A DNA stretch of 64,000 nucleotides from Blepharisma stoltei ATCC 30299 (lineage: Eukaryota > Protista > Ciliophora). Positions 15,774 to 62,951 of the stretch are shown here, one piece after another. The notes below the pieces were generated by a model. That model did not search any database. It had not been told where the DNA came from and saw only the letters and a list, made by a program, of their open reading frames with translations. The DNA is taken from assembly GCA_965603825.1 (NCBI GenBank), contig CBFDEM010000044.1, positions 620,001-684,000 on the forward strand, read 5' to 3'. Made by a program: the position numbers and the translations under genes. How positions within the stretch are numbered: the stretch's first letter is position 1; each line of letters opens with the position of its first letter.

Positions 15774-17043
15774 ATGGAATGCTGAAAGCAGAGATGCCAA
15801 AATAAAGAAAAGTTTTTTGCAAATGTGAGAATCATATCAGCTACTCTTGCGTCACTCATATATATAAGCGTCTTCGAAATGAGTCTATTAGAAGGCATAA
15901 ACCTGAAACCTTAAAAGTAAAAGTAAATCAAAGAAATAAGGAAGCTTTAAGTGAAGAGTTACAAAAGCTATCAAAACATTGCTTGATGTAAAAGAAAACT
16001 TAAACAAAGACACATATATGAAAATGCAAGAATTAAAAATGCCACTTATTAAAGCTCTAGAAAATATAGAGAGAATAAATCAAGTGGATTTGATTAATAA
16101 GATTTACTCCATCAAAAAAATATCAAAAGTAAATCCATATCCGTTTGAAATGCTATTAAGCTTAGATCCAGAGAGTGCCCGAAAAAAGTTGAATGAGTTT
16201 TGGTGCAGTTTTAATTATTGGGATTTTGAATTTAACAAAAATGATAGAATCGATACTGTTGAAAACAATGAAATTGTATACTTCTTTAAATATTGTTTTA
16301 TTTTTATTAGTGAGACATATTTTTAGGGCTAATACAAAAACCTTGGTTAGAGTAAATTTGACTAATTTTTCAAATTCTGAGCAGGAGATGGAAATTCTTC
16401 AAAACAATGCTAGTCGTACTTATTGTATTTCAATGTGCCTTCATGATAAATCTATATTTTGCTATGGTAATTATCCTGCAACAGCATTTATATTAAACCC
16501 AGATAGCACTATTAAAAAGCTTTCAGATGGAGATCCCCCATCAAGCATGGGTGCTGTGTATCATGATGGCTTTATTTGCTTATTTGGAGGATGAACCGCT
16601 GCAGGCAATACAGCAGCAAAATATAAGCTATCAACTGATACGTGGCATAAAATTTGCTCTCTGAATGAAGCTCTGCGCAACGTTTCATGTATTGTAGGAA
16701 ATTATGGAATCGCATTTGTTGGCTATGAAAATAGCAAACTATATTTATATAATCATGCTCAAGATATTTATAATGAAATTTATCTCAACTTTGCAGCTAA
16801 AACTTTCAAAGTCTTGCTCCAAGCAGAAAATCGAGTATTTTTAATCGATTCCGCAAAAAATATATATAAAGTGAGCCAAATCAGCTAAGCAATTGGCAAA
16901 TTATAGTAGATTCGCAGATTAGCTATGGTTGCAGAGTAGCATATCAAGCTTACTTCAATCAAAGTTGCTATTTTACGGATAGGGAATGTAAAATATATAA
17001 ATTTGATATGATCAGATTAGATTTAGCAATGATTCAGGTATAA
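15774..17043 (+). pseudogene. Zn-module/coiled-coil/Kelch-like family 1, copy A (frameshifts, ~40-bp insertion)
   Basis: Starts ATGGAATGCTGAAAG and is colinear with intact copy 39661..40917; frameshift near 15810 and an insertion at ~16279-16318. Confidence 0.85.
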
Positions 17044-17769
17044 TGAATCAAAATTTGAATAATTTAATTTTGTTTTTAGCATCAAAATAAATAAGTTGTA
17101 ATATTAATTTGTTATACTTTCACAATTGAACAAATTGATTTTCAAGTAGACGATTATTTAGCATAAATTTTATATATCTATTAAATGACGATTGCGCTCA
17201 GCCCATTCTCTCATGTGACGGTTAGCTATGCATATCAGGGCAATATTTGAAGCCTGGAGTTAGACCAACATATGGTGCCACAAAGCGAGGGATTAAAGCA
17301 AAAATCCGTTTCTTTGTCCCTGATTCAATGTGTGATTACTCATGATTTATTTTTGCAAGCAGCACTCAAGCTAGCGGATGCCCGAATGGATCGAGTGAGC
17401 ACCTACTCATGCTGCTAAGGTGATCTACCCTTAATCGAGGAAGATATTGAGTGCTTTTTGGGTGACCTGGCAAAAGGGAAGGTTAAAGGGCTCAGAAAGG
17501 GAGTGATATTGACCATGGATGATGGGTAGAGAGATTAACTATTTGACCGAAGTGACCAAGTCAGATACGGTGGTACTCCTGCAAAGGTTCGACCAAGCAA
17601 GATAATACCAGTAATGGAAACCAAGGTTTAGCCTAGGTTTGGAGTTATCAAAGGTGGAAGTCACCCAATCCGATTGTACTCCAGGCTGTTTAGTCGGCAC
17701 AGGATCCCGTCTGTGTGAAATGGGGAGCTAAGCAAAATTTATTATTAATTTAAACCCTAAAATTAAATA

Positions 17770-17990
17770 TTTGTTATTATAAATCATTGTTAATCCTTTG
17801 CTTATAGTTCTCCTTTCAGCTCCTATATAGACAATCATTTTATCACCGCATCTCTGGTAATCGATATAACGAATTGTTTCTTTATCTATGGACTCTATTT
17901 ATTTGTCCCAATGCGTGGCAATTTTTACTGCGAGACGAATGTAAGACCTAAATTGTGGTTTGAAATCTCAGCAGTTGATATTATTTAGGC
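17770..17990 (+). pseudogene. TLC-gene 5' relic downstream of copy A
   Basis: Homologous to the N-terminus of the TLC pseudogene at 50553..51274 (RIVSFI.GL segment). Boundaries approximate. Confidence 0.6.
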
Positions 17991-18149
17991 TATGCTATAT
18001 AACCCAAAACCTCTTTTGGCTCGACTTCTCGATCTTCCAATAAAATAAGCGAGTAGGTTGAACCAACTTATGTTGGTCAAACAAATCGGCAAATAAATGA
18101 AGCCCAAATCGAGCAAGAAATAAATATGACTTGAATTAAAATAATCTTA

Positions 18150-18450
18150 AAATATTTTATTATACACCCAGAAATAAAAATATTTCTATTAAATTGCTCT
18201 ATTGCTACATAATCAACTTTTGATCGTTGAACTAATTTGATATTGCCTTTGTTTAAATAAACCTGCAAGATAGAGATAATGATAATAGGCATTTTCATTG
18301 AAATAAATGGCTGATGAACTATAGAAATGGTGCTTAAGCCGGCTATATCGATAGAGAAATCAAAAAAATCAAGGAATTTTATGGACTAAATCCAAATCTT
18401 CTGCAAGATATAAGTATTTGATAAAGATGTAATTAAATCTTGAAAAATTA
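18150..18450 (+). pseudogene. Decayed paralog fragment of the XPA-like domain of the F-box/Rab fusion family
   Basis: Broken NC.YC..., TCK and IKKIKEFYGLNPNLL match NCVYC, ICK and VKQIENRYEVDPNLL of 18810..20252. Boundaries approximate. Confidence 0.5.
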
Positions 18451-18809: not shown

Positions 18810-20252
18810 ATGAGAATCTCATTTTATTTAGAAGAAAGTCAATGCCAAAGAAACTGTAGCTGCTGTCCAAAGACTATAGAAAAAGGAGACTTAACAGTAA
18901 GAACTTGATATTATTTAAGATTTTATTTTTTTCACCTGAGCTGTTATACCCCAGGGCTCAAGCAGCCCATCTATAAAAAAGACTTACAAATTTGACTAGC
19001 AAACCCAGAAAAAGAAAAAATTTTCAATTTATGGCTTGAGAAATGAAATAAAAACTTTGCTCCAATAAATGAACTCGAAATTGATCTCCCAATGGCTTCT
19101 AAATTCACTTACTCGAAGCCTTCTACTTATAGAAGAGCATGATTAGAAACCTTTAAATTTCTAAACGCAAAAGAAATTGCTTTATCAATTTCTCACGTAA
19201 ATAAAGATTTTTACCTCATTTCATGTGACGAAGAATTATGATATTTTAATTCTATAAGAGATTATGGCAAAATAGAGCCTGATATAAGAAATTATAGAGA
19301 GCAATATATTTTATTTACTTTGAGAAACTGTGTGTATTGCCACAAAAATGCTGACGAGGATAATATTGTAGGAAATCTTTATAATAAGTCGATTTGTAAA
19401 GCTTGCAAAGGATTGAGACGGTTTGATAAAATGACTGTAAAGCAAATAGAAAATCGATATGAGGTTGATCCAAACCTTTTGGGTTTGAAATTTGATATGA
19501 GTGTAGAAGGCTGAAAAAGGACTTATAGATTTATGGCGATAGAAGCAATAAAGAAAAATAACGCAAGCTTTATAAAAGTCAATCCAACTGGGATCAATGT
19601 AGGTGAAGAAAATAATTTGGACTTGGTACTTCCAAAAACGCCTTTGAATAAAAGAATTATAAAAATAATCATAGTTGGTGACTCAACTGTCGGCAAAACT
19701 TCTCTCATGAATCAATATGTCATCAAAAGGTTTTCTGAGGTATACAGAGTTACTATTGGTGCTGACTACATGGCGAAAAATATCAATATAGATGGCAAAC
19801 TAATGACTCTTCAAATCTGAGATAAAGCAGGCTGAGAGTGCTATTTCAGCGAAGAAGCTGCGTTTTACAGTGAAGCTGACTGCTGTATATTGGTCTATGA
19901 CATAACATCATGTAAAAGCTTCGAGAATCTTAAATCATTAAAAGAAAAAATTTTGTCGCTCAGGAACGATAAAACTGATGTAAATTTTCCATTTATTGTA
20001 GTGGGAAATAAAGTTGACAGAGAAGATGAAAGAAAAATCTCAAGTGAAATTGCGAGGCAATGGTGCAGAGAAAACGGAAATATTCCGTTTTACGAGACCT
20101 CAGCTAAGGAGTATATCAATATTGATAACGCTTTTATGATGATTGCAAGAAATGTACTGATGCATGCTGAAATAAACACATCTGAGTGTGATTTTCCAAA
20201 TCCAGATGCTGAGAAAACCATAAAAAGGAGTCCATCATGCGTTGTTATCTAA
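18810..20252 (+). CDS. 480-aa fusion: PARP-type Zn finger + F-box + XPA-like Zn/helical domain + Rab7-like GTPase with CAAX
   Basis: Single frame from ATG 18810 to TAA 20252 with only TGA inside. CSCCPKTIEKGDL...FHLSC; WLETFKFLNAKEIALSISHVNKDFYLISCDEELW; CVYC-x18-CKAC...KMTVKQIENRY...LKF; GDSTVGKTSLMNQYV, TIGAD, QIWDKAGWE, ADCCILVYD, FPFIVVGNKVD, ETSAK; ends CVVI. Confidence 0.85.
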
Positions 20253-20941: not shown

Positions 20942-22636
20942 ATGGAATGCTGAATGCAAGGGTGTCGAAAAAAAGTTAAAGTTTTCTGCCAATGTGCGAA
21001 TCCTGTAGCCTACTCTTGCGCCGCTCATATATATGAGCATCTTCAAATTGCTTCGTTTTTAAAGCATGATCCTCAAACCTTAAAAATAAAAATAAATCCA
21101 AAAAACAAGGAAGATTTAATTGAAGAACTACAAAAGCTATCAGAAGAATTGCTTGATATAAAAGAAAACTTAATAAAAGAAACATATAAGAAAATACAAG
21201 AGTTAGAATTATCACTTATTGAGGCGCTAAAACGTATTAACAAGATAAGACTAAATCAAGGTGAATTAATTAGAAATATTGAGATGGTAAAAAAATTACC
21301 AAAAATAAATCAAAATCCGCTTGAAAATCTTTTAAGCTTAGATTCAGATAGTGCCCGAAAAAAGTTGAACGAGTTTGGATGCAGTTTTAATCGTTCAGAT
21401 TTTGAATTGAACAAAAAAGATAGAACCGATATTGTTGAAGACAATGAAATTGTGTATTTTAGGGCTAAATCAAAAAACTCAGTTAGAGCAATAATAAATA
21501 ATGCATCCCAGCCTCAAAAAGCTAATGAGACTCAGGGAAATATGCTAAGCCTAGATTCAATTGCAGCTGATCAATCTCACTGTTCTTTAACCATAGCCGA
21601 CCTCATAAAGCTTCAAAGTGTGCTTCGAGGATACTTTGATCGAAAAAAGACAAAAGAAGCTTGCACAAGTCTAAAAGCTGATCAAGTCGAAATAGAGCTA
21701 GGAAACCAAAAGGCAGCTTCCGAATCCCAACCTCCCTTCTTCAGAGGCTACATGCAAAATGATATGCAAGACATCCCTATAACAGGCACCGAAATCATCC
21801 TGATTCCTGATGGAAATGTCCCAGATTATTCCAATAATGAAACAAGAGCTGCCCAATCCAAGCTTGGGAACTTCAGCCCTCCTCCCCCTCCTAACGATCA
21901 GACTGTCAAAACAAAGCATGGGCCTGCTCAGATTGAAAATGGAGCAATTTATACAGGGGAATGGAATAATGATAAACAGAGACATGGCTATGGAGTCCAA
22001 GTGTGGCCTGACGGCTCGAAATATGAAGGGTACTGGATGTTTGACAAAGCAAATGGAAAAGGAAGACTCATACATGGAGATGGAGAAGTCTATGAAGGAG
22101 ACTGAAAAGATGACAAAGCCCATGGCTATGGAGTTTATATGCACACTGAAGGAGCTAAGTATCAAGGTAATTGACAAGATGATAAACAGCATGGAAAAGG
22201 AATAGAAACTTTTCCTGATGGAACTAGATATGAAGGAGATTATATCAATAGCAAAAAAGAGGGCCGAGGCATTTTCATTTCGGCCGATGGGAACACTTAT
22301 GATGGGGAGTTTCAAGATGATAAACCCCATGGAATCGGAAAATATACATGGAGCGACGGCAGAATCTATATAGGAGAGTGAAAGAACAACAAAATGGATG
22401 GCAAAGGGCTATTTAAATGGCCTGATGGGAGAAGCTACGAAGGTGAGTATGTTGAAGATAAGAAGCAAGGATATGGCACTTTTACTTGGCCAGACGGAAG
22501 GAAATACCAAGGATTTTGGTTTAATGGAAATCAGCATGGGAAAGGTGTTTTTTTCTTTGCACAAGGGAATAAAAGAGAAGGAGAGTGGAAAAATGGGATA
22601 AGAGTCAATTGGATTTTAGATGAAAATAATAATTAG
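20942..22636 (+). CDS. 564-aa chimera: family-1 Zn module + coiled coil fused to IQ motif + MORN repeats (copy B)
   Basis: Uninterrupted frame with TGA=Trp at MORN YxGxW positions (e.g. 22103). Family-1 sequence runs to 21488, then [16 protein letters not shown] (IQ) and about ten YEGxWxxxKxHGxG repeats; TAG stop. Confidence 0.87.
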
Positions 22637-22644
22637 CTTAACTT

Positions 22645-22888
22645 CAGATAGACATTCTTCAAAAAATGTGAGTCTTTCTGAAGCTATTTCTATGTGTCTT
22701 CTTCCTGATAAATCTATATTTTGCTATGACAATTATCACCATTTATATTACACTCAAATAACACTATTAAACATCTTTCAGATGGAAATCGGTCATCAAA
22801 TATGAGCGTTGTGCATCATGATGGCTTTATTTACTTATTTGGAGGATGAAATGCTAGAGGTAGTACATCAAATAAAGCAGCAAAATAT
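22645..22888 (+). pseudogene. Orphaned propeller remainder of family-1 copy B
   Basis: CAGATAGACATTCTTC...ISMCLLPDKSIFCY...HDGFIYLFGG resumes right after the MORN stop and is decayed. Confidence 0.8.
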
Positions 22889-27160: not shown

Positions 27161-28092
27161 TTATACCTTCTTCATCGTTAATTGTAAGCTTTTTATATCA
27201 AATTTATATATTTTACAATCCCTGTCCATGAAATAGCAACTTTGATTGCAATAAAATTGGTATGCTATTCTGCAATGGCAGCTAATCTGCGATACTCCTA
27301 TAGTTTTCCAATTGCTCAGTTGATACAGCTCACTTTCATATATATATTTTGAGGATTCAATTAAAAATACTCTATTTTCTGCCTGGAGCAAAACTTTTAG
27401 AGTATTAGCTGCAAAGTTGAGATGAATTTCATTATAAGTATCTTGCTTATGATAATATAAATATATTTTGCTACTTTGATACCCAACAAATGCAATTTCA
27501 TAATTTCCTGCAATACATGAAATCAAATACAGAGCTTCCTTCAGAGGACTGATTTTATACCACTTATCAGTTGATAACTCATATTTTGCTGCTTTATTCC
27601 ATGCTTGACCTGAAGCATCTAATCCTCCAAATAAATATATAAAGCCATCATGATACGCAGCACCCATATTTCCTGACGGATCTCCATCTGAAAGCTGCTT
27701 AATATTATTAGTTGGATACAATATAAATGCTGTTCCAGATGCAGGATCATTACCATAGCAAAATATAGATTTATCAGGAAGGAGACACATAGAAATGCAA
27801 TGAGGAAGACTAACATTGTTTTCAAGAATGTCTAACTGTTGCTCAGACTTTGAAAAATTGGCTAAATTTACTCTAACTAATTTTTTTGTGCCTCCCCTAA
27901 AAAATGCAATTTCATTATTTTCAACAGCATTGATTCTGTCATTTTTGTTCAATTCAAAATCCGAACGATTAAAAGTGCACCCAAACTCTTTCAACTTTTT
28001 TCGGGCACTATCTGGATCTGAACTTAATAGCTTTTCAAGTGGATTTTGATTTGCTTTTGGTAATCTTTTTATCGAGTAAATTTTTCTAATTA
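27161..28092 (-). pseudogene. Family 1 copy D, 5'-truncated (propeller frame intact)
   Basis: Homology begins abruptly at LIRKIYSIKRLPK (~28092); the Zn module and most of the coiled coil are replaced by the upstream region of the neighbouring F-box/Rab gene. Confidence 0.8.
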
Positions 28093-28131
28093 AGCATTTA
28101 TTGTAAATAATTATAAAATTATAATAATTTA

Positions 28132-29557
28132 ATGATAAAATCTTTATTTTACATAGAAGCCAACCAGAGCACGGGAGTTTGCAAGGAATGCTCAGGAGTA
28201 ATATTAGAAGATGCATTGATGATTAGAACTAGGAAATACAATAAATTTTATTATTTTCATTTGAACTGTTATACTCTTAAAGTCAAAAAATACATTAGTA
28301 AAGATGAAATAGAGATTTGGAATTTAGACTCAGAAAATGAAAGGATTCTCGATCTATGACTAGAGAAGTGAAATAAAGATTGAACTCCTGCAGACAGAAC
28401 TGATCATATAATTCATGAAAATAAGACTCATGACAATACAGCTCCTAATAATAGCACTCCAAAAGTCTACTCAGAGCTCCCTAAAAATAGAAGGGTATGA
28501 TTAGAAGTCTTAAAATTTCTATCTCCTGAAGAAATGATTAGATCCATTTCTCAAGTCAATAATTACTTTTATCTAATCTCAAACAATGAAGAGTTATGAA
28601 AATTTTATTATTTAAAAGATTTTGGGAATATAAATTCTAATGAAACCCATTATAAGAACCAATATATTGCTCTTGCTGCAAAATGCTGTTTTTGGCTCCA
28701 TAAAATCGCAGATGAAAATAATCATCTTCTATCAATTTGCCCAAGATGCGGAATTTCTGAAATTAATCCTCAAGCTTTGAAATTGAAATTTAATATTTGG
28801 GATCGTCTCTCAAAAAAGAAATATCAAAATAAGTTAAACCCGGCAATTGAAAAATTTAATATGAAGAAGAGAAATTTAATAAGAATGATTCAAAAAAAGT
28901 TTAAGGATTATAGTCTAGCTAATTTTGCTGGAAAAGGGAAGTGTGAAGAATTTATTGATCTAGATTCTGTATATTCTTTACTAGAAATCGAATCATCATT
29001 TAGTTTCAGAGAAATAGAAATAAGAATACTTATTATTGGAGACACTGGGCTGGAGATAATTCTATTTCAGTCAATATTCTGGTAAAACTTTTACTTCTAC
29101 TTCAGGATATAACTTGAATAGTTGAAAAAGGAAAGTTAAAATGGAAAATAAAGAGATAATTATTCGATTTATAGCAGTTGGGATCCGAAGCTTCATATGC
29201 ATGCCACCTTATTTCTTTCACAGCTCTGACTGTTATATACTAGTCTTTGACATAGCATCAAGAGAAAGCTTTGATCATCTTGAGGAAATAAAAAAAAGAC
29301 TTTTAGCTTACTTGAATATAGAGCCAAATGAAGATTTCCCATTTGTGGTAATAGGGAATAAGACTAATATGGTAAGAGAAGTGCCATATGAGATGGCAAA
29401 AGAATGATGCAGAAAAAGTGGAAATATTTCAGTATTTGAGAGTTCAGCAAATGATTATATCAATATTGCTACAGCATTTGAGATGGCAGCAAAGAAAGGA
29501 GAAGAATGGCACATAAAAAAGTGATTTGAGAATTGCATCAAAAAATCCAAAAATTAA
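28132..29557 (+). pseudogene. Second PARP-ZnF/F-box/Rab fusion paralog; frameshift at the P-loop, degenerate GTPase
   Basis: CKECSGVILEDAL...FHLNC; RRVWLEVLKFLSPEEMIRSISQVNNYFYLISNNEELW; ILIIGDTG, then a frame change at ~29050-29066; SDCYILVFD, FPFVVIGNK, ESSA; stop TAA 29555-29557; no CAAX. Confidence 0.78.
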
Positions 29558-31712: not shown

Positions 31713-32963
31713 TTATACCTGAGTCATCGTCAATTGTAAGCTGTTCATATCAAATTTATATACTTTACAATCTCTGTCCATGAAATAGCATCTTTGATTG
31801 AAATAAACTTGATATGCTGCTCTCCCATAGCTAATCCTCGATGTTCCTATATTTTTCCAATTGCTTAGTTGATTTGGCTCACTTTCATATATATTGTACG
31901 AGGATTCGATTAAAAATAATCGATTTTCTGCTTGCATCAAGACTTTGTTAATATTAACTGCAAAGTTGAGATAAATTTCACTATAAATATCTTGCTTGTG
32001 GTTATATAAATATAGTTTACTACTTTCATAGCTAATAAATGCGATTCCATAATTTCCTGCGATACATGAAATACGACTTAGATTTTGGTTCAGAGGGCAA
32101 ACTTTGTACCACCTATCAGTTGATAGCTCATATTTTGCTGCTTTATTCCATGCCTTACCTTTAGCTTTTCACCCTCCAAATAAGTAAATAAAGTCATCAT
32201 GATAAACAGCGCCCATACCTCTTGATGGATCTCCATCTGATAGCTGTTTAATCGTGTTATCTGGATACAATATAAATGCTGTTCCGGATGAAGGATAATT
32301 GCCATAGCAAAATATAGACTTATCAGGAAGAAGACACATAGAAATATTATTATGACTTGCATTGTTTTGAAAAATGTCTATCTGCTGCTCAGACTTTGAA
32401 AAATTAGTCAAATTTACTCTAACCGAGTTTTTTGTACCTCCCCTAAAAAATACAATTTCATTGTTTTCAACAGCATCAGTTCTGTCATTTTTGTTCACTT
32501 CAAAATCGGAACGATTAAAACTGCATCCAAACTCATTCAGCTTTTTTCGGGCACTTTCTGGATCTAAACTTAATAGCCTTTCAAGTGGATTTGGATTTAT
32601 TTTTGGTAATTTTTTTACCGAGTCAATCTTTCGAATTAAATCGGCTTGGTTTAGTCTTATTTGTTCAATGTTTTCTAGTGCTTTGATAAGTGAAAATTCT
32701 AATTCTTCTATTTTCTTATATGTATCTTTGATTAGGTCTTCTTTTATATCAAGCAATTCTTTTGATAATTTATGCAGTTCTTCAATTAGGGCTTCCTTAT
32801 ATTTTTGATTTGGTTTTAATTTTAAGGGTTCAAGCTTGTGCTCTTCAAAAGAAGCTGCTTGAACATGCTTAGAAATGTGGATTTTGCAAGAGTAGAGGAC
32901 AGGATCCACACATTTGCAGAGAACTTTGACTTTATTTTTGCATCCTTCCTTTCAGCATTCCAT
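31713..32963 (-). CDS. Family 1 copy E, intact 416 aa (Zn module-coiled coil-Kelch-like propeller)
   Basis: MECWKEGCKNKVKVLCKC...C..H...H through to TAA with only TGA inside; Kelch-like GFIYLFGG...AAKYEL..DRW and SIFCYG motifs. Confidence 0.85.
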
Positions 32964-41049: not shown

Positions 41050-41282
41050 ACTCTAAAAGTATTACTCCAGGCAGAAAATAGAGTATTTTTAATAGAATCA
41101 GAAAAAAATATATGAAAGTCAACTAAGCAATTGGGAAATTATAGGATCAGCGCAGATTAGCTATGATTTCAGAGTAGCATACCAAGTTTGTTTCAATCAA
41201 AGTTGCTATTTCATGGACAGAGATTGCAAAATATATAAATTTGATATGGAGAACTTAGAATTAACGATGACTCAGGTATAAT
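41050..41282 (+). pseudogene. Family 1 3'-end fragment
   Basis: KVLLQAENRVFLIES...CYFMDRDCKIYKFDM...MTQV* with indels. Confidence 0.8.
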
Positions 41283-43128: not shown

Positions 43129-43709
43129 ATTTCTTGTAAAGTAGCCTTGATTTTAAAATTTACTTTTTCTTAAAGATATCAATTTCATATTTATCATCTC
43201 TGTTATTTAACAATAAATAAAAGCCCTTATTTACCTGTAAAATTTTATGAAGTTAATAAAGTTATCATAGATCCCAAACTTTCACATACACAATGTATTA
43301 TACTTAAAATAGCTTCAAGAAATCGCAATTACTGTGATTTCAAAGTTGTTATTTAGGTCTTCCATTCATCGGCCAGTAGAAACTGCAATCGTAGTTGAAA
43401 AAGTAAAAAGAGTCCATGGATGAAGAAAACAGTCGATTTCAGAAATCCCAAAATCTCTTTTGCAGATAATTAGCAGGAATGCATGGAATAAAAATGACTA
43501 TTTACAGAAACTAAATGAGAAAATCAACCATGTTTTATAATAGTAAATATTTAATTTTCAGATTTAAATTAGCATTAAACTTTGCTTAGCTTTTGGCTTG
43601 AAACTTTATATTAAAAATATTTTACTTTGTGAAAATAAATTTGGTCAATTGTGAAAATATAACAAATTAATTTTACAAAGTATTATTTTGATGTTAAAAT
43701 CAAATTAAA

Positions 43710-45687: not shown

Positions 45688-46204
45688 ATGGAGTGCTGGA
45701 AGCAGGGATGCAAAAATGAAGTAAAAAGCTTTCTGCATATGTGTGAAGCCTGCAAGCTACTCTTGCAGCATTCATGTATATAAGCATCTTCAAAGCGCTT
45801 GTCTCGTAAAGCACCAACTTGAGACCTTAAAACTAAAAATAAATCCAAAAATCAAGGAAGCCTTAATAGATGAGCTACAAAAGCTGTCAAAAGAATTGCT
45901 TGAAATAAAAGAAAACTTAATCAAAGACACATATAAGAAAATACAAGAATTAAAATTACCTCTTATTAGAGCACTAGAAAATATTGAAAAAATAAGAGTA
46001 AACCAAGCTGATTTAATTAGAAAGATTTACTTAATTAAAAAAATACCAAAAATAAATCAAACTCCTTTCGAAAACCTATTAAGCTTAGAACCAGATAGTG
46101 CCCCAAAAAAATTGGATGAGTTTGGGTGCATTTTTAATCGTTCAGATTTTAAATTTAACCAAAAAGATAGAATCGATACTGGTGAAAACAATGAAATTGT
46201 ATAA
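45688..46204 (+). pseudogene. Family 1 copy L, 5' half only, early frameshift
   Basis: ATG GAG TGC TGG AAG (TGG where paralogs have TGA); extra A near 45725; truncated after NNEIV. Confidence 0.82.
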
Positions 46205-46207
46205 ATC

Positions 46208-46335
46208 TTTAAGCATTTAACGTAAATTATTATAAATTATAATATTTTAATGAAACCAGCCAGGATAAAACAGTTTGCAATGAATGCTCAGGAGCGTTAT
46301 TAAAAAAAGCTTTAATGATTAGGACTAGAAAAAAT
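46208..46335 (+). pseudogene. 5' fragment of the PARP-ZnF/F-box/Rab family
   Basis: TAAGCATTTA..ATAAATTATAAT..GTTTGCAATGAATGCTCAGGAG..TTAATGATTAGGACTAG matches 28090-28232. Confidence 0.7.
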
Positions 46336-46391
46336 GATTTATCTATTTATTTTTCTTAAAGAGCTTATGCTCTTAACAAGCTCTTAAGGGT

Positions 46392-46680
46392 TTTTTAGTA
46401 ATTGTTTTTCCAGATAAGATATTAAAAAAGATATGCATGCTTCCTCAAAGTTTGAGGATAAAGCGATTGATTGATTCCTTTTGAATGTTGTAGTCAGCAA
46501 AAGTTCTTTCATCTTCCAATTGTTTACTTCCGAAAATGAGTCTTTGCTAATTTTGAGGAATTCCTTCTTTGTCTTAATTTTGGCTTTGACGTTGCCAACG
46601 GTCTCTAAGGATTCAACACCAAGAGTAATCGTTCTTCTAGTCAGAGTCCTTACGAAGATCTGCGTACCCCTTTTGAGTTT
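46392..46680 (-). pseudogene. Decayed polyubiquitin fragment (end of one unit, one full unit, start of a third)
   Basis: KLKRG|TQIFVRTLTRRTITLGVESLETVGNVKAKI/(Q)[33 protein letters not shown]...LKLWGS|MHIFFNILSGKTIT; one frameshift and one TAG. Confidence 0.88.
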
Positions 46681-46689
46681 GAAGAAATC

Positions 46690-47460
46690 AAGTAGCGTTC
46701 CCTGCTTAGGTCCTCTCTGCCAGCCTCCTCCCTTTTCTCCTTTTCCTAAGTTCTTTTTTTTTTCTTTCTCCATCTCCATCTCCTTCATCGCCTGAACCTA
46801 CTTTAACAATATTTTATACCTTCCTCTCATTTGACCAAGTTTTCAAAATTTTGCTCGTAAAAAGCAACCTCAATCAGCCCTACCTCCCTCCAGTTGCAAT
46901 TGGCATCTTCCAGTAGTCTCTCAAGTCTCACCCTTTGGTTGCTGTATTTTTGGAATCTGCCATAAGTGCATTTTGTCTCCTCAATCCCGCAGTTCTTGCA
47001 CAATGGGCTGCTTGCTAGATGCCTTAAGTGAGCATTATGGTTGCAGAAAAAAGCCAGCCCTTAGTTGATGAATTGTACAGATTGCTACTTCTTGGTGAGG
47101 TTTGGACTTCAAGAAGGTAGGCAAATCTGTGTTTACCTTTCCCTCCATCAACTCCCTGGACATCCGGGTAGTTTTATCAGTCTCCTGCTCAAGCCTTCCA
47201 AGGCTCTCCTTTATATTGAGCACTCTTATCCTGTTGTCGAATTAGTCTCCCACTTCAACCTGCCTTACCTCCTCTTTGTCTCCAAACTCATTTAGGCAAG
47301 CTTCTCCATAATTTTCTTACACTTTCTCTCTCAAGAGAGGTTTAGTAAGCACTGATCTCTCTCATCTCCTTCGTAATCTGATTTCTTGACTCAAGGATTT
47401 TTTTGCGAAATGTGAGAGTCCTCTTCCATGATTGATTTTTAAGAGAGACTCAGCCTACGC
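46690..47460 (-). mobile_element. Relic of a non-LTR retrotransposon ORF2 C-terminal region (zinc-knuckle part)
   Basis: GC-richer than its flanks; broken frame reads TIHQLRAGF./HNAHLRHLASSPLCKNCGIEETK...KYSNQRVRLERLL, resembling the QLRTGH..L..HL.....P.C..CG.EET..H....C..Y...R..L tail of LINE ORF2. Confidence 0.6.
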
Positions 47461-48543: not shown

Positions 48544-49801
48544 TTATGCTTGATTCATCTTTAATTGTAAGCTCTTCATATCAAATTTATATATTTTACA
48601 ATCACAGTCCATGAAATAGCAACTTTGATTGAAATAAACTTGGTATACTGCTCTGGAACCATAGCTAATCTGCGATGCTCCTATAATTTTCCAATTGCTT
48701 AGTTGACTTGAATTACTTTCATATATATTTTTTGAGGATTCGATTAAAAATACTCGATTTTCGGCCTGGAGCAAGATTTTATGAGTATTAATTGCAAAGT
48801 TGAAATAAATTTCATTATAAATATCTTGCTTATGATTATATGAATATAGCTTGCCACTTTGAGCCCCAACAAATGCGATTCCGTAATTTCCTGGAATACA
48901 TGAAACGTAACTTAGATTTTCATTCAGAGGGCAAATTTTATACCACTTATCAGTTGATAGCTCATATTTTGCTGCTTGATTTCATGGACTACCTGAAGCA
49001 TTTCATCCTCCAAATAGGTAAATAAAGCCATCATGATACACAGCGCCCATATTTCCTGACGGATCTCCATCTGAAAGCTGTTTAACAGTGCTATCTGGAT
49101 ACAATATAAATGCTGTTCCTTCTCCAGGATGATTTCCATAGCAAAATATAGATTTATCAGGAAGAAGACACATAGAAATAGCTTGAAGATAACTAGCATT
49201 GCTTTGAAGAATGCGTATCTGTTACTCAGACTTTGAAAAATTAGTCAAACTAATTCTAACTGAGTTTTTTGTGTTAGTCCTAAAAAATACAATTTCATTG
49301 TTTTCAACATTATCGATTCTGTCATCTTTCTTTGAGTTCAAAATCTGAACGATTAAAACTGCACCCAAACTCACTCAACTTTTTTCTGGCACTATCTGGA
49401 TCTAAGCTTAATAGCTTTTCAAGTGGATTTTGATTCATTTTTGGTAATTTTTTTACCGAATAAATCTTTCTAATTAGATCCACTTGATTTAATCTTATTT
49501 TTTCAATATTTTTTAGCTGTTTAATAAGTGATAATTCTAATTCTTGTATTTTCTTATATGTGTCTTTGATTAAGTTTTCTTTTACTTCAAGCAATTGTTT
49601 TGATAATTTATGCAGCTCTTCAATTAGGGCTTCTTTATATTCTTGATTTGGTTTTAATTCTAAAGGTTCAAGCTTGTGCTCTACGATAGAAGGTGATTGA
49701 ATATGCTTTAGCATGTGGGGTTTGCAAGAGTATCAGGCAGGTTCCACACATCTGCAAAAAACTTTGAATTTATTTTTGCATCCTTCCTTTCAGCATTCCA
49801 T
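48544..49801 (-). pseudogene. Family 1 copy M with a single +1 frameshift (or an assembly indel)
   Basis: The N-terminal frame and the propeller frame are each open; one extra base near 49330. Confidence 0.75.
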
Positions 49802-50037
49802 CATTAACTAAGATAAATTTATAGATTCATGAACATGATTAATAAATCCATTGCATTCTTAATCATTTGAACATAATTTGCCTAAAGAAAATTAAGAATC
49901 TATAAAAAATGAAAGATTTATTAAAATTGTTTATTTAAGCACCAAAAGCAGTTCAATACCTTCACTTCATTTTTTATCTCCCTTTGATCCTCCATAATTC
50001 ACAGTAAAAAGAAAACAAAAATCCTCTAAACAGTTTT

Positions 50038-51440: not shown

Positions 51441-51735
51441 ATTAAACTTGGGTTATCGTGAATTGTAAGCAGCCGATGCCGCATATATATATTTTACATT
51501 CACCGTCCATGAATACAATTTTGATCAAAATAAGCTTGGTATGCTGCTCTGCCGCTATAATTAATATGCGATGTTCCTAGAATTTTTCGATTTCTTAGTT
51601 GACTTGGCTCACTTTCATATATATTTTTAGAGCTTTCAATTAAAAATACTCGGCTTTTTGTTAGGATCAAGATTTTGTAAGTATATGCTGCAAATTTAAG
51701 ATAAATTTCATTATTAATATCTTGATTATAATTAT
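51441..51735 (-). pseudogene. Family 1 decayed 3'-end fragment
   Basis: Homologous to the QDIYNEIYLNFAA..RVFLIESSKNIYESEP..AAYQAYF segment. Confidence 0.7.
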
Positions 51736-52314
51736 ACTTTTTTGGTGGGAGGTTATTTAAAGCACTTATAAGGGCTAGAGTTTATTTTGATAAGATATTT
51801 TCCAGTTTAAAACTATTAAATTTGAATAGACTTTCATGAGATTTTGATCTAATTATATAATAAAACTATAAATAAAATTTTTAAATTTAATTTGAATTTA
51901 TTTTCATTTTTTAATTATTTATTAAAATGAAGCTTTTCCAAAGTAAGAGATGGTATCACTACATAATTTAAATAAAATGGAAAATTTAGATTTAGATTTA
52001 AATAGAAATGTTTAGTTGCGATCCTACTTATTAAAATTTTTGAATTAATTAGGCAATCTCAAATCAATAGGCTTATCTATCATGTGAAATAGCTAGCTTA
52101 ATTATGGCTGTGCGCGATAGCAAGGCAATTTTTGTCCGTAATGAACTTTGAAACTATTTTAAAATACATAAGAATTATATAAAATTAGAAAAACAAGTAA
52201 CTGAGGCTATTTTCAAGTTTAAGATAATCTCAAAATTTTTGCCAAAAATCAAGCTTGATAGCCACTTAAGAGCTTTAGAACAGTTTAAACTTATTTTACT
52301 CTACTAATTTCTAT

Positions 52315-53461: not shown

Positions 53462-54718
53462 TTATATCTGAGTTATCGTTAATTGTAAGCTCTTCATATC
53501 AAATTTATATATTCTACAATCACTGTCCATGAAATAGCAACTTTGATTAAAATAAACTTGATATGCTGCTCTGGAACCATAGCTAATCTGCGATGCTCCT
53601 ATAATTTTCCAATTGCTTAGTTGACTTGAATTACTTTCATATATATTTTTTCCGGATTCGATCAAAAATACTCGATTTTCTGCCTGGAGCAAGACTTTCC
53701 TGGTATTAGCTGCAAAGTTGCAATAAATTTTATTATATATATCTTGCTTATGATTATATAAATATAGTTCGCTACTTTGAAACCCAACAAATGCGATTCC
53801 ATAATTGCCTGCAATACATGAAACGCGGCTTAGATTTTCTTTGAGAGGGCGAATTTCATACCACTTATCAGTTGATAACTCATATTTTGCTGCTTGATTC
53901 CATGCATTACCTTGAGCATTAAATCCTCCAAATAAGTAAATAAAGCCATCATAATACACAGCACCCATATTTCCTGAAGGATTTCCATCTGAAAGCTGTT
54001 TAATAATGCTATTTGGATACAATATAAATGCTGTTCCTTCTCCAGGATAATTGCCATAACAAAATATAGATTTATCAGGAATAAGACACATAGAAATAGC
54101 ATGAGGATGACTAACATTGTTTTGAAGAATATATATCTGCTTCTCAGACTTTGAATAATTGGTTAAATTTACTCTAACTGAGTTTTTTGTGTTATTTCTA
54201 AAAAATACAATTTCATTGTTTTCAATATCATCGGCTCTATCATTTTTGTTCAATTCAAAATCGGAATGATTAAACTTGCACCCGAACTCATCCAACTTTT
54301 TTTGGGCACTATCTGGATCTAAGCTTAATAGCTTTTCAAGTGGATTTTGATTTATTTTTGGTATTTTTTTTATCGAGCTAATGCTTCTAATTAAATCAAC
54401 TTGATTTATTCTTATTTTTTCAATATTTTCTAGCGCTTTAATAAGTGATAATTTTAACTCTTGTATTTTCTTATATGTGTCTTTTATTAAGTTTTCTTTT
54501 ATATCAAGCAATTCTTTTGATAATTTATGCAGCTCTTCAATTAGGTTTTCTTTATATTTTTGATTTACTTTTATTTCTAAGATTTCAAACTTGTGCTCTT
54601 CAATAGAAGTAGCTTGAGCATACTTATACATGTGGATTTTGCAAGAGTAGCTGGGAGAATCCATATATTTGAAGAGAACTTTGACTTTATTTTTGCATCC
54701 TTGCTTTCAGCATTCCAT
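53462..54718 (-). CDS. Family 1 copy N, intact 418 aa but with degenerate Zn ligands
   Basis: Open frame; N-terminus MECWKQGCKNKVKVLFKYMDSPSYSCKIHMYKY (CxC changed to FKY, H changed to Y). Confidence 0.85.
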
Positions 54719-55435: not shown

Positions 55436-56485
55436 TTATAGTTTAGTCATCAGCTTTAACCCCAAAGAAAATCTGTAGTAGTGTGGCTCTTCATCATTTT
55501 GCAAAGTCCCAATATAGATGCCGCCTTTATTATATGAGCAATTCACATGAAAAGGATTATCACTAATTATATTTTCCTTAATTTTTTTTCAAGCATATTC
55601 GTTTCCAACATCGCTTTCATAAATAAATCCATTTCGACACTCAAACAAATACAGCCTTTCTTCTACATTTATCAAGATTTTTCTTTTGCATATTGAAAAT
55701 TCATAAGGGATTGTGGAATAAGAGTCAATATCGATTGAGTATAATAATAGATGCTTATTCTCTAATCCAGAAATCAAAATATCCCCCTTAAATATCACGC
55801 TATGGCTCATATAGTAAGCCTGTGGCATTGGAGCAATGTCAAATCAACAATTTCTATCAAAATCATATCTACGAGATCGAGCTAATTGACTATCATTTCA
55901 TTTTTCTCCGAAGCAGTAAACATTTCTATTTAAATAGATAGCTGATGAACCAAAATAATACGATTCATATTGCAATTTTCGAAATTCATAGTTTCTGTCA
56001 ATTATAAATGTACTTTCAGAAAACCCATTTTTACCTACAACAAATAATTCACCATTTGGAAGTTGAGTAATTGCTGCGTAAAAGCAATCTAAAGATTCAG
56101 AAATTTCTAAAATTTTATTTTCTTTTGTTTCACTTTCAGTGTTATAAACATATAAATGATTTTTACTATTTGCCTCTGAAATAAAATAAAGAGATGAGAA
56201 ATGATGATAAGTGGTAATATACTCATTATAAGCTTTGCTGAGCGCTTCGTCAAAACGTGAACTCTGATTCTTGTAAAATAAATAAGTCGTCCTGAAATCT
56301 CGCTCTATTGTAGGGCCAATTGCTCTTTTCAAGAGCACTGATCTCTTATTTTCTAGCTCTTTAGGGTTTAATAACTGATCAATCGAGTGCTGATCGAGTC
56401 CTCATCTTTGGGTGGGCTTAAGTTTGGATATGTAATCTTCAATAGATTTAGCACAGTTAAATAAGTTGGCCTTATTTTGATCCAT
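55436..56485 (-). CDS. Kelch-like family 2 protein, intact 349 aa
   Basis: Track ORFs 55898..56338 and 55589..55828 join through TGA; helical N-terminus, then ITQLPNGELFVVG, SSAIYLNRNVYCFG, YDFDRNCWFDIAPMP, RLYLFEC; TAA at 55438-55436. Confidence 0.82.
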
Positions 56486-56961: not shown

Positions 56962-58216
56962 ATGGAATGCTGAATGCCGGGATGTCGAAATAAAGTTAAA
57001 GTTTTCTGCTAATGTGTGGATCCTGCCAGCTACTCTTGCACACTCATATATATGAGCATCTTCAAATTACTTCTTTTTTAAAGCATAACCCTCAAACCTT
57101 AAAAATAAAAATAAATCCAAAAAACAAGGAAGCTTTAATTGAAGAGCTGCAAAAGCTATCAGAAGAATTACTTGATATAAAAGAAAACTTAATCAGAGAT
57201 ACATATAAGAAAATACAAGAATTAGAATTATCACTTATTGAGGCGCTTAAACGTTTGATAAAATAAGACTAAATCAAGATGAATTAATTAGAAAGATTGA
57301 CTCCATAACAAAATTACCAAAAATAAATCAAAATCCAGTTGAAAAACTATTAAGTCTAGATCCAGATATTGCCCCAAAAAAGTTGAACGAGTTTGGGTGC
57401 AATTTTGATCGTTCCGATTTTGAATTAAACAAAAATGACAGAACCGATGCTATTGAAAACAATGAATTTGTATTTTTTAGGGGAGGCACAAAAAACTATG
57501 TTAGAGTAAATTCGACTAATTCTTCAAAGTTTGAGCAGCAGATAGACGTTCTTCAAGATAATGTTATTTATCCTGATGCTATTTCTATGTGTCTTCTTCC
57601 TGATAAATCTATATTTTGTTATGGCAATTATCCTGGAGAAGGAACAGCATTTATATTGTATCCAAATAGCACTGTTAAACAGCTTTCAGATGGAGATCCG
57701 TCAGGAGGTATGGATGCTGTGCATCATGATGGCTTTATTTACTTATTTGGAGGATGAAATGCTGCAGGTAATTTATCGAATCAAGCAGCAAAATATGAAT
57801 TATCAGCTGATAAGTGGTATAAAATTCGCCCTCTGAAGGAAAATCTAAGTCCCGTTTCATGTATTGCAGGCAATTATGGAATCGCATTTGTTGGGTATCA
57901 AAGTAGCGAACTATATTCATATAATCATAAACAAGATATTTATAATGAAATCTATCGCAACTTTGCAGCTAATACTTATAAACTTTTGCTTCAGGCAGAA
58001 AATCGAATATTTTTAATCGAGTCCGAAAAAAATATATATGAAAGTGAGCCAAATCAACTAAGCAATTGGAAAACTATAGGATCATCGAAGATTAGTTATG
58101 GTTACAGAGTAGCATACCAAGTTTATTTCAATCAAAGTTGCTATTTCATGGACTGGGAATATAAAATATATAAATTTAATATGAAGAGCTTACAATTAAT
58201 GATGACTCAGGTATAG
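56962..58216 (+). pseudogene. Family 1 copy O (premature TAA, frameshifts); N-terminus closest to chimeric copy B
   Basis: TGC TAA at ~57010 and indels near 57040 and 57255; propeller frame open to TAG 58216. Confidence 0.85.
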
Positions 58217-59131: not shown

Positions 59132-60508
59132 TTATAGCTGATTCATCGTTAATTGTAAGCTCTTCATATCAAATTTATATAGTTTATCATTATTGTCCAT
59201 GAAATAGCAACTTTGATTGAAATAAACTTTATATGCTACTCCGCGACCAAAGCTAATCTGCGCTGCTCCTATAATTTTCCAATTCGTTAGTTGATTTGAT
59301 TCACTTTCATATATGTTTTTTCCTGATTCGATTAAAAGCACTCGATTTTCTGCCTGGAGCAAGACTTTGTTAGTATTTGCTGCAAATTTGAGATAAATTT
59401 CATTATAAATATCTTGCTTATGATGATATAAATATAGTTTGCTACTTTCATACCCAACAAATGCGATTCCATAATTGCCTGCAATACATGAAACGCGGCT
59501 TAGAACTTCATTCAGAGGACAAATTTTATATCACTTATCAGTTGATAGCTCATATTTTGCTGCTTTATTCAATTCATTACCATAAGCATCTCATCCTCCA
59601 AATAAGTAAAATAAAGCCATCATGATGCACAGAACCCATACCTGCTGACGGATCTCCATCTGAAAGTTGTTTAATAGTGCTATTTGGATACAATATAAAT
59701 GCTGCTCCAGATACAGGATAATTGCCATAACAAAATATAGATTTATCAGGAAGAAGACACATAGAAATATTAGAAGAATATTTAACATTGTTTTGAAGAA
59801 GTCTATCTGCTGCTCAGACTTTGAAAAATCGGTCAAATTTACTCTAACTGAGTTTTTTTGTGCCTTGCCTAAAAAATACAATTTCATTGTTTTCAACAGC
59901 ATTGTTTTCAACAGCATTGTTTTCAGCAGCACTGCTTTCAACAGCATTGTTTTCAACAGCATTGCTTTTAACAGCATTGCTTTCAACAGCATTGCTTTCA
60001 ACAGCATTGCTTTCAACAGCATTGATTCTGTAATTTTTGTTCAATTCAAAATCGGAACAATTAAAACTGCACCCAAACTCATTCAATTTTTTCTGGCAAT
60101 ATCTGGATCTAAACTTAATAGCTCTTCAAATGGATTTTGATTTATATTTCGTATTTTTTTTTACCGAGTCAAATCTTTTTAATTAAATCAACTTGATTCA
60201 ATCTTATTTTATCAATACGTTTTAGTGACTCAATGAGTGATAATTCTAACTCTTGTATTTTCTTATATGTTTCTTTTATTAGATTTTCTTTTATATCAAG
60301 CATTTCTTTTGATAATTTACACAGCTCTTCAATTAGGGCTTCCTTATGCTTTTGATTGGTTTTAATTTAAAGTGTTCAAACTTGTGTTCTTTAATAGAAG
60401 CAACTTTAAAATGCTTATAGATATGGATTTCGCAAGAGAAGCTGGGAGGTTCCACACATCTGCAGAAAACTTTGACTTTATTTTTGCATCTTGCTTTCAG
60501 CATTCCAT
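59132..60508 (-). pseudogene. Family 1 copy P with several 1-nt indels and a linker minisatellite
   Basis: Full-length homology; indels near 60490, 60360, 60170, 60090, 59855, 59790 and 59610. Confidence 0.8.
59885..60024. repeat. 15-bp coding minisatellite, about 9 units (NAVES/NAVEN)
   Basis: CATTG(T/C)TTTCAACAG repeated about 9 times; paralogs have one unit. Confidence 0.92.
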
Positions 60509-61114
60509 GATTAAGATATTTATAGATTCAACAAAATGACTAATAAAAATCATTGTATTCTTATACATTTCCATATAATTTATCTAAAGAGAATTTAGCA
60601 TCTATAATATTCAAGAATTACTATAATTTATTGCATAAATTGCTTAGTCATTAAACCTTCTTGAACTAATATGCTTTAAAGCTTGATTTGGTGTAATATA
60701 CTTCTGAACTTAAACAACATATTTATAATTGCCGCTGGTTTTTCACTTTGTCTGCAATTTTTGGAGCTTTTGTATTTATTTCGATTATCAAGTGAAATTG
60801 GACATATTCAAAATTAACTTATGTAAGTGCTTATAAATGAAAATACCGAAGCGATCTGCTAAGAAATTTTAGTGACGATTTCTATTTTTTGCCTTTGTTT
60901 AAGGACTTTTGCTTACTTTAACTGTGAATTCTGGAAATCAAAATGAAAAATCAAGTAAAGATTTTAGCTAGCTGCTTCTGATGCTTAAATAATAATTATA
61001 GATTTAATTTTAATATTTTTTATTCTAAATTCTTTTATATTTCATATTCTTCCTTTTCAGGATAAATCGCTTTATCAATTATTCCATTTTCTTGAATCTA
61101 TAATAATGCTAATC

Positions 61115-61205
61115 ATGGAATGCTGAATGCAGGGGTGTCAAATAAAGTTAAAGTTTTCTGAAAATGTGTGAATCCTGTCAGCTACTCTTGCAGAATTTAT
61201 ATATA
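61115..61205 (+). pseudogene. Family 1 copy Q, 5' stub with plus-type upstream region
   Basis: ATGGAATGCTGAATGCAGGGGTG...CTACTCTTGC, then homology is lost. Confidence 0.75.
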
Positions 61206-61693
61206 TTAGTGGCTATATGCTTTTCATCAGAAGCATTTCCTCTTGCAGGCTTTTCGAACTCTATTATCCAAACTTTTTTCTCTTCAGATATTTGGTCAAA
61301 AATACCAGTCTTTGTAAGCAAATATCTGATGAAAAAAAACTTCAATCAAATGACTAAAGAAATCACAATTAGCGTTCCATTTGCTGGCTAATAGAAATTG
61401 CCAAAGCTAAAACAAGTAAAAAGAGTCCATATATGAAGAAAGCAATAGATTTCATAAATATAAATCTTTAGTAGGGATATTTGTATACTACATAGGATAC
61501 AAGGATAAGCACAATTGTTGATACAGAAGCAACTTTAGACAATTAATTAGTTTTATAATAGTAAATATTTAATTTTCAGGTTTAAATTAATAACAAACTT
61601 AGCTTGCTCTTGGATTTTGAAAATCGCAAATTAATTTTACAAATTATTTGTTTTGATGCTAAAAGCTAATTAAATTATTTAAATTTTGAATGA

Positions 61694-62951
61694 TTATATC
61701 TGAGTCATCGTTAATTGTAAGCTCTTCATATCAAATTTATGTATTTTACCAGTATAGTCCATGAAATAGCAACTTTGATTGAAATAAACTTGGTATGCTG
61801 CTCTGGAACGATAGCTAATCTGAGATGTTCCTATAATTTTCCAATTGCTTAGTTGATTTGGCTCACTTTCATATATATTTTTTTCGGATTCGATTAAAAA
61901 TACTCGATTTTCTGCCTGGAGCAAAACTTTGTTAGTATTTGCTGCAAAGTTGTGATAGATTTCATTATAAATGTCTTGTTTATGATTATATGAATATAGT
62001 TTGCTACTTTGATTACCAACAAATGCGATTCCATAATTGCCTGCAATACATGAAACTAGACTTAGAACTTCATTCAGAGGACAAATTTTATATCATTTAT
62101 CAGTTGATAATTCATATTTGCTGCTTTATTCAATGCATTACCATAAGCATTAACATCCTCCAAATAAGTAAATAAAGCCATCATGATACACACCACCCAT
62201 ATTTCTTGACGGATCTCCATCTGAAAGCTGTTTAATAGTGCTATCTGGGTACAATATAATGCTGTTCCAGATGGAGGCCGATTGCCATAGCAAAATATAG
62301 ATTTATCAGGAAGAAGACACATAGAAATAGCATTAGGATGGCTAGCATTGTTTTGAAGAATGTCTATCGTCTGCTCAGACTTTGAATAATTGGTCAAATT
62401 AACTCTAACTGAGTTTTTTGTGTCTTTCCTGAAAAATATGTACAATTTCATTGTTTTCAGCATCATCGATTCAATCTTTTTTGTTCAATTCAAAATCGGA
62501 ACTATTAAAACTGCACCCAAACTCATTCAACTTTTTTCGGGCACTGTCTGGATCGAAGGTTAATAGCTTTTCAAGTGGATTTCGATTTATTTTGGTAATT
62601 TTTTACCGAATTAATTTTTCTAATTAAATCAGCTTGATTTATTCTTATTTTCTCAATATTTTCTAGCGCTTTAATAAGTAACAATTTTAATTCTTGTATT
62701 TTCATATGTGTTTCTTTTATTAAGTTTTCTTTTATATCAAGCAATTCTTTTGATAATTTATTCAGCTCTTCAATTAGGGCTTCTTTATATATTTGATTTG
62801 GTTTTAATTCTAAGTATTCAAAGTTGTGCCCTCCAATAGAATCAGCTTCACCATGCTTGTACATGTGGACTTTGCAAGAGTAGCAGGCAGGCTCCACACA
62901 TTTGCAAAGAACTTTAACTTTATTTATGCATCCTTCCTTTCAGCATTCCAT
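61694..62951 (-). pseudogene. Family 1 copy R with several 1-nt indels
   Basis: Full-length homology split over track ORFs 62571..62897, 62074..62466 and 61694..61924. Confidence 0.8.

Follow-up and report, generated by a model that had tools for sequence, protein, structure and literature searches.

What does a dense cluster of intact and broken copies of one gene in the macronuclear genome of the ciliate Blepharisma stoltei encode, and is it a working repertoire of binding proteins or the residue of a single amplified gene? We addressed this question for a stretch of 64,000 nucleotides of the B. stoltei macronuclear assembly (C44:620001-684000, G+C ~30%), hereafter the window, whose first nucleotide is position 1 in all coordinates below. 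An earlier note, made from the sequence alone, had described positions 15774-62951 as a ~47-kb birth-and-death array of RING-less TRIM-like genes, and the tandem array is confirmed as observed there. The explanation we consider best, and somewhat probable, is that these genes encode dimeric binding proteins of a diversified family, built from a zinc module, a coiled coil and a Kelch propeller, and that the array is an old burst of duplication that has since mostly decayed. As part of this explanation, the array would be one tandem cluster of a very large ciliate family specific to heterotrichs.

Array copies were located by tblastn with one copy as query, under both the standard code and code 4. 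In three copies, TGA aligned with a Trp of another copy (FGG-TGA vs FGGW), and the copies ended at a common TAA. This pattern, read from the alignments, indicates that UGA is Trp and TAA/TAG are stops in the array genes, i.e., that code 4 fits. UGA is also given as Trp in the B. stoltei genome paper (PMC9942806). We rejected the standard code, under which array copies were interrupted at TGA codons opposite Trp, and code 6 (TAA/TAG read as Gln), which yielded spurious long open reading frames (ORFs) in all frames and overran the conserved C-terminus.

The search returned 21 copies or pieces of one gene on both strands between 15774 and 62951, in line with the ~20 estimated previously, with family pieces making up ~21 kb of these 47 kb. 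The span described earlier does hold copies, but the true array is longer: two further full-span copies lie past the window end (window-equivalent 64803-66067 and 67476-68856), for a total of ~53 kb and ~23 copies or pieces. The second of these, on the minus strand, contains 127 extra nucleotides inserted at reference nt 859. The gene has ~418 codons and is intronless. Five copies are open under code 4 (c05, c08, c09, c13 and c17 below), the same five that had been called intact, but the last of them lacks three zinc ligands. Seven full-span copies are broken, each by 1-7 frameshifting indels and 0-2 premature TAA/TAG codons, one copy is the chimera already recognized in the earlier note, which fuses a family N-terminus with an IQ/MORN segment, and the others are truncations or fragments. 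Copy c08, with its product P0001, served as the reference for structure and residue numbering. The array members in the window are as follows, those without a copy number being delimited by tblastn:

15774-17043 (+): c01, full-span pseudogene with four frameshifts, including a 40-nt insertion at nt 514; zinc ligand H33 changed to Arg
20942-22636 (+): c02, chimera joining residues 1-203 (zinc module and coiled coil) in-frame with IQ/MORN; 564-residue ORF under code 4
22665-22888 (+): propeller remnant, residues 201-279, of the gene split by the IQ/MORN segment
23741-24987 (-): c03, full-span pseudogene with three single-base frameshifts
27161-28093 (-): c04, 5'-truncated copy, residues 109-418, with an open propeller frame
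31713-32963 (-): c05, intact, 416 residues (P0003)
33790-34903 (-): c06, internal deletion of residues 74-146; 33790-34608 holds residues 147-418 and is open, 34685-34903 holds residues 1-73
35511-36764 (-): c07, full-span pseudogene with a premature TAA (codon 71) and a TAG at a Trp codon
37560-38816 (-): c08, intact, 418 residues (P0001)
39661-40917 (+): c09, intact, 418 residues; an in-frame ATG lies upstream at 39607, and homology begins only at 39661
41023-41278 (+): C-terminal fragment, residues ~331-418
41666-42007 (+): divergent propeller fragment, 28% identical to array copies and, from its sequence, probably derived from another subfamily
42776-43130 (-): C-terminal fragment, residues 300-418, frameshifted
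43710-44969 (-): c13, intact, 419 residues (P0004); the B-C loop of blade 3 holds an in-frame insertion
45689-46246 (+): c14, N-terminal fragment, residues 4-185, with stops
48544-49804 (-): c15, full-span pseudogene with one frameshift and one premature stop
51445-51736 (-): C-terminal fragment, residues 321-418
53462-54718 (-): c17, open ORF of 418 residues (P0002), with zinc ligands lost by C16F, C18Y and H33Y
56962-58216 (+): c18, full-span pseudogene with two frameshifts and one stop; sister of the chimera c02
59132-60497 (-): c19, full-span pseudogene with seven frameshifts; its residual ORF is P0008
61115-61206 (+): N-terminal fragment
61694-62951 (-): c21, full-span pseudogene with five frameshifts

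P0008 starts with about ten near-identical five-residue units (MLLKA/MLLKT), an out-of-frame reading of a short tandem DNA repeat grown within the dead gene. Two trivial sources of the broken frames were considered and rejected. Sequencing errors do not account for the frameshifts, many of which lie outside homopolymers and are accompanied by stops and large deletions or insertions. Neither do introns, reported as 15-16 nt in B. stoltei (PMC9942806): the open copies have no introns, and frameshifts measure 1-2 nt, not 15-16 nt.

The AlphaFold2 (AF2) model of P0001 (mean predicted local distance difference test score, pLDDT, 80) comprises a zinc module (residues 1-45), one long helix of ~60 residues (53-114), a partly helical linker of low confidence (115-168), and a six-bladed Kelch propeller (169-418), the latter also identified by Foldseek. 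The tripartite layout of zinc module, coiled coil and propeller with Kelch-like blades proposed from the sequence holds up. For the propeller, Foldseek retrieved KEAP1, KLHL12, KLHL17 and KLHL20 at E ~1e-12 with a template-modelling score (TM) of ~0.7, the matches listed all being Kelch propellers, natural or designed. Repeat families from Pfam were all Kelch or Kelch-type propeller, with Kelch_1 down to 5e-12 in distant paralogs and array copies near the cut-off of the Kelch hidden Markov models (HMMs), e.g., Kelch_4 at 25.4 bits vs 21.6. The propeller is thus Kelch and not NHL, and the TRIM-NHL layout invoked earlier is not supported. No Pfam match to BTB, BACK or F-box was found in the family members scanned.

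We next consider the helix, for which a homodimer was predicted from two copies of residues 1-165. The prediction scored 0.49 against 0.02 for the best control, a mark reached by 21 of 30 solved same-chain pairs and 0 of 23 solved single chains (17 of 29 and 0 of 30, respectively, on eukaryotes). The runs shared at least 37% of contacts, with a partner pLDDT of at least 56. Because the confident contacts (85-85, 78-92, 74-99, 70-102 and 63-106) all sum to ~170, the predicted pairing is antiparallel and centred on residue 85. The helix is therefore predicted to form an antiparallel homodimeric coiled coil with the geometry of TRIM dimers, in agreement with the heptad region read earlier, now modelled as a single helix, and with the coiled-coil dimer of TRIM kind suggested for it. 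PF25600 (TRIM_CC) found no match in the array proteins. In such a dimer, the ~60-residue helices would pair into a two-fold symmetric scaffold that sets one two-zinc cross-brace module of B-box1-like fold at either end and gathers two six-bladed Kelch propellers.

Next, we evaluated the history of the array and the selection acting on it. Coding regions are 74-89% identical among copies (91% for the closest pair), and homology reaches 100-700 bp into the flanks. The maximum-likelihood tree of 18 copies is nearly a star, with terminal branches of 0.05-0.17 and a single strongly supported fork, which unites the chimera c02 and the copy at 56962. Such a tree argues that the copies arose in a single burst of duplication, accompanied by inversions, and not through births that still continue. 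Of the birth-and-death turnover proposed before, the tandem array with its mostly dead copies stands, but the births trace to one old burst and ongoing turnover is not visible. Pairwise dN/dS was ~0.5 in every comparison (open-open, 0.48; broken-broken, 0.51; open-broken, 0.50), and broken copies carried 0-2 premature stops, whereas neutrality predicts 4-9 on a terminal branch. Given so few stops and equal dN/dS, all copies must have been kept under selection for long, and their deaths must be recent.

Selection was then resolved by structural class, computing dN/dS (omega) in the open copies with the blade register set by the Kelch GG, Tyr and Trp landmarks. Omega was 0.29 in strands, 0.27 in the coiled coil, 0.34 in the linker and 0.33 in the A-B/C-D loops, as opposed to 0.84 in the D-A/B-C loops and 1.17 at non-ligand positions of the zinc module (33 codons, a value only nominally >1). 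The framework is under purifying selection, while the D-A/B-C loops and the surface of the zinc module evolve near-neutrally. Purifying selection on framework residues, which the earlier note had made a test of its own reading, is accordingly present (omega 0.27-0.34), and no positive selection was seen at the class level in the D-A/B-C loops, their omega not exceeding 1. Amino acid diversity was 0.39 in these loops, whereas strands reached 0.13 (p = 5e-10) and opposite-face loops 0.155 (p = 3e-5). Differences are thus concentrated on one propeller face, in keeping with the earlier interpretation. The D-A/B-C loop face is the ligand-binding face of KEAP1 and KLHL proteins. Since variation falls mainly on this face, we infer that the family would be a diversified repertoire of protein-binding receptors.

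The same patterns may, however, be read as those of a decaying redundant array, in which an ordinary Kelch scaffold was amplified once and its loops vary merely from weak surface constraint. We regard this alternative as unlikely, although the likeliest of the rivals: the star-like tree contains no young duplicates among the array copies, 16 of the 21 window pieces are broken, omega is ~1 and not >1 in the loops and is equal in open and broken copies, and even the open copy c17 is already without one zinc site. Yet framework omega has stayed at ~0.3 over ~0.28 synonymous substitutions per site, the premature stops, well below the neutral expectation, imply that copies were retained during most of their existence, the opposite-face loops are conserved (diversity 0.07-0.24), and the same architecture recurs in Stentor as well as in at least 150 genes of this genome (see below). 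The cluster itself formed in a single local burst of duplication and inversion, which was followed by long divergence under purifying selection on the framework, and more than half of the copies died recently by frameshift, stop or truncation.

The nature of the N-terminal head is less readily assigned. Its signature, C-x4-C-x7-C-x-C-x7-C-x2-H-x3-H-x6-8-H, comprises eight ligands. In 46 distant family members (18-33% identity), six of them (C3, C8, C16, C26, H33 and H42) never vary, and the other two (C18 and H29) hardly do; eight conserved Cys/His ligands are enough for two zinc ions, the predicted content. The Cys/His spacing noted earlier was exact but missed the eighth ligand, His42. In the AF2 model, residues 1-45 form a small strand-strand-helix module, with a pLDDT of 79 when modelled alone. 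No Pfam family matched the module, either in single N-termini or in all 46 members; PF00643, the B-box family, matched 0 of 46 members at E up to 10; and no RING HMM matched P0001-P0004 or the 46 N-termini. The array protein begins at the module itself (M-E-C-W...). RING and U-box HMMs found no match in the 46 members, PDB sequences gave the module profile no match beyond a 17-residue chance alignment, and hhalign, run on the module and eleven canonical B-boxes from B. stoltei itself, returned a probability of 1.2%.

The module model was then compared with solved folds. The closest solved folds to the module model (VIA) were the COL2 tandem B-box (Z 5.5) and TRIM28 B-box1 (Z 5.2, root-mean-square deviation 1.7 Å over 42 of 43 residues), both at Z values in the range that the tool calls common. 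These were followed by the CYLD B-box insert, the CPEB1 ZZ domain, the ZFYVE19 B-box and PML B-box1, with U-box and RING domains ranking after the B-boxes at Z 3-4.4. Foldseek retrieved the same kinds of domain, at E > 2, and an Atlas structure search led to an ANCHR-like B-box cluster (TM 0.68). The spacing of the second ligand half, C-x2-[HC]-x3-H-x6-8-H, fits the B-box1 consensus. In addition, the three ligands missing from c17 (C16, C18 and H33) would, in the cross-brace scheme, be three of the four belonging to one site, the fourth being H42, with all four of the other site, C3, C8, C26 and H29, kept, a joint loss that agrees with the cross-brace reading; c17 may either have begun to decay or be a variant that binds one zinc. 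The models thus suggest a B-box1-like or RING-like cross-brace fold, which does not by itself make the module a B-box. The earlier comparison with B-boxes is not supported at the level of sequence, given the 0 of 46 PF00643 matches and the hhalign result, only the fold resembling B-box1 (Z 5.2-5.5), and as judged from the profiles the module is a domain without a Pfam model.

Another possibility is that these proteins are self-contained E3 ubiquitin ligases, in which the zinc module would be a divergent RING/U-box-type domain binding E2 (ubiquitin-conjugating) enzymes, and the proteins would not be RING-less at all. U-box and RING domains are indeed among the structural neighbours, and paralogs carry a true U-box in the same position, directly before the coiled coil. 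Against this stand the lack of any RING/U-box HMM match across the 46 members, the B-boxes that occupy the top fold matches, and a ligand spacing that fits the B-box1 consensus, not C3HC4 or RING-H2. We consider the ligase interpretation quite doubtful.

To place the array in its genomic context, we turned to the size and spread of the family. P0001 matched at least 104 places in the genome when 100 of 673 first-look candidates were scored. Over 60 of these matches are full-length at 25-39% identity, and many of its relatives lie in tandem groups (on C46, C13, C3, C35, C36, C37 and C54). The zinc-module profile, which provides the genome-wide copy count called for in the earlier note, hit at least 150 genomic sites (150 of 150 scored, out of 351 candidates). 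The family is thereby far larger than the canonical B-box set of the same genome, for which PF00643 gave 71 matches at E ≤ 0.01, with at least 68 that exceed the cut-off. Some 14 of the 150 zinc-module sites lie <20 kb from a contig start (e.g., C36:4516, C40:1352, C22:1951 and C24:4099), i.e., ~9% vs ~3% expected with starts only counted, which may point to an enrichment of family members towards chromosome ends.

Beyond B. stoltei, a family profile run against 1.8 billion cluster representatives yielded 324 matches below E 1e-30. Among the 30 matches looked up, 17 came from B. stoltei and 3 from Stentor coeruleus (OMJ66303, OMJ78079 and OMJ83907); the remaining ones belong to assemblies that are environmental or unlabelled and show a compact eukaryotic gene order. 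Members in Stentor coeruleus imply that the family is older than the Blepharisma/Stentor split. The Stentor members are annotated as "hypothetical proteins", databases otherwise giving "Kelch motif family protein", and the literature searched contained no description of the family.

Several B. stoltei paralogs carry the same coiled-coil/Kelch body with other domains attached: P0063 and P0149 have a U-box head (4e-19), P0093 carries a protein kinase in the place of the zinc module, and P0035 has TPR repeats C-terminal to the body. The genome also encodes complete, canonical RING/B-box/coiled-coil/Kelch proteins of ~595 residues, a ciliate case of the tripartite-motif architecture ending in a Kelch propeller (C1:429.7-431.5 kb and C53:690.3-692.1 kb), the first of which matches RING at 1e-9, PF00643 at 4e-9 and Kelch_1 at 2e-36. 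Other RING and B-box genes of B. stoltei have different C-termini, one with an LRR_6 match. As a lead only, a language-model search put the family beside metagenomic clusters in which Kelch_1 occurs together with zf-B_box or RING.

How do these proteins relate to known systems? With TRIM/RBCC proteins, including RING-less and TRIM-NHL forms, they share a small zinc module of putative cross-brace fold, an antiparallel coiled coil (predicted here) and a C-terminal, presumably ligand-binding propeller. They differ in having no RING and no TRIM_CC, in a zinc module that fails the B-box HMM and uses C-x4-C and C-x-C knuckles instead of C-x2-C or C-x2-H, and in a propeller that is Kelch, not NHL or SPRY. 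The description "RING-less TRIM-like" therefore remains apt as an architectural analogy but not as family membership (no RING, PF00643 or TRIM_CC match), and the array family appears TRIM-like in architecture while not being TRIM by any sequence criterion. The RING/B-box/coiled-coil/Kelch proteins of B. stoltei have the same order of parts and the same Kelch end, the family profile matching their blades, but possess a real RING and PF00643 domain, neither of which is found in the array family (hhalign 1.2%, as above). P0063 and P0149 are closer, with a homologous coiled-coil/linker/Kelch body (profile E ~1e-53 to 1e-40) and a head in the same position; in them, however, a U-box, a known E2-binding fold, replaces the zinc module, and the coiled coil is longer. 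With KLHL/KEAP1 and F-box-Kelch proteins the array proteins share the six-bladed Kelch propeller (TM ~0.7 to KEAP1, KLHL12, KLHL17 and KLHL20) and, for KLHL/KEAP1, a variable face formed by the D-A and B-C loops, whereas they carry no BTB, BACK or F-box and would dimerize through the predicted coiled coil, not through BTB.

Given the analogy with RING-less TRIM and Kelch adaptors, and U-box paralogs in the slot of the zinc module, the most likely job of these proteins would be passing bound targets to ubiquitin-type or assembly machinery, and we regard a ubiquitin-type targeting role as plausible by this analogy. The tripartite logic of a cross-brace head, antiparallel coiled coil and variable propeller would have been assembled and expanded outside animals, with zinc module, RING plus B-box, U-box or kinase as alternative heads in one genome. 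This opens, in a tractable organism, the questions of what such heads contribute and whether single-celled predators maintain diversified intracellular receptor repertoires.

Several points weigh against our preferred explanation. The B-box likeness of the head is at the level of the fold and weak for 45 residues (Z ~5, Foldseek E > 2), and sequence profiles (Pfam, PDB sequences and hhalign) link the module to nothing. The dimer prediction may partly reflect solved TRIM coiled coils that the model has memorized. Loop omega is ~1 and not >1, so that relaxed constraint alone could yield the observed pattern; the omega profile of the pseudogenes equals that of the open copies, leaving openness as the sole sign that the five remain selected; and the ubiquitin link rests on domain-swap paralogs and not on the array genes.

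A bolder version of the repertoire, in which hundreds of heterotrich genes would form the protist counterpart of TRIM5/finTRIM against viruses, endosymbionts or prey, strikes us as quite improbable. TRIM5 and finTRIM are clustered multi-copy genes with variable binding surfaces, and the array genes resemble them in all three respects. A dedicated anti-pathogen defence locus, whose propellers would recognize viral, bacterial or symbiont proteins in the manner of TRIM5/finTRIM, is more doubtful still. A large, clustered family with a variable binding face would suit such a locus, as would the ~9% of zinc-module sites near contig starts, but omega is not >1 in the array, recent births are not seen in the tree, and some environmental members are single genes among housekeeping genes; a defence role is speculation. 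Finally, one gene stacked by mis-assembly is barely credible and not a serious concern given the high divergence and private lesions, as copies differ at 11-24% of nucleotides, each has its own lesions and flanks, and the published assembly is shown with HiFi (DNA) coverage (PMC9942806).

Three further genes are interleaved with the array copies:

18810-20252 (+): gene outside the family, with an N-terminal zinc region, an F-box-like region and a Rab-type GTPase (Ras family, 1e-24, in the C-terminal piece)
28132-29557 (+): second F-box-like/Rab paralog by homology, broken into two ORFs
55436-56485 (-): head-less Kelch gene of 349 residues, assigned to a "long" subfamily by eye from its translation

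Elsewhere in the genome, this "long" subfamily carries a U-box, kinase or TPR repeats. The F-box-like match of the first type of gene reached 23.0 bits, short of the cut-off of 24.3, and zf-PARP was likewise sub-threshold, both in a TGA-free paralog only. The link to ubiquitination that the earlier note had drawn through interleaved F-box fusions is thus weak, and, from sequence, the U-box paralogs would provide a better ubiquitin link than these F-box-like neighbours. F-box/Rab genes as functional partners of the family were rejected: ~4 of 13 genomic matches lie <10 kb from a Zn/Kelch gene, a share too small to be meaningful against a dense background.

Within the array, the middle of a 134-residue ORF at 46387-46788 (-) gives a sub-threshold match to the first half of ubiquitin (PF00240, 22.5 bits, E 9.6e-5), and the ORF resembles a remnant of a decayed ubiquitin gene. 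Ordinary genes flank the array: a 1719-residue repetitive protein with an apparent signal peptide and C-terminal membrane anchor (1234-6393, -), a protein with ankyrin-like repeats and a DHHC (palmitoyltransferase-type) motif, as judged by eye (8917-10134, +), and a RING-H2 protein (11431-12240, -; zf-RING_2, 1e-11).

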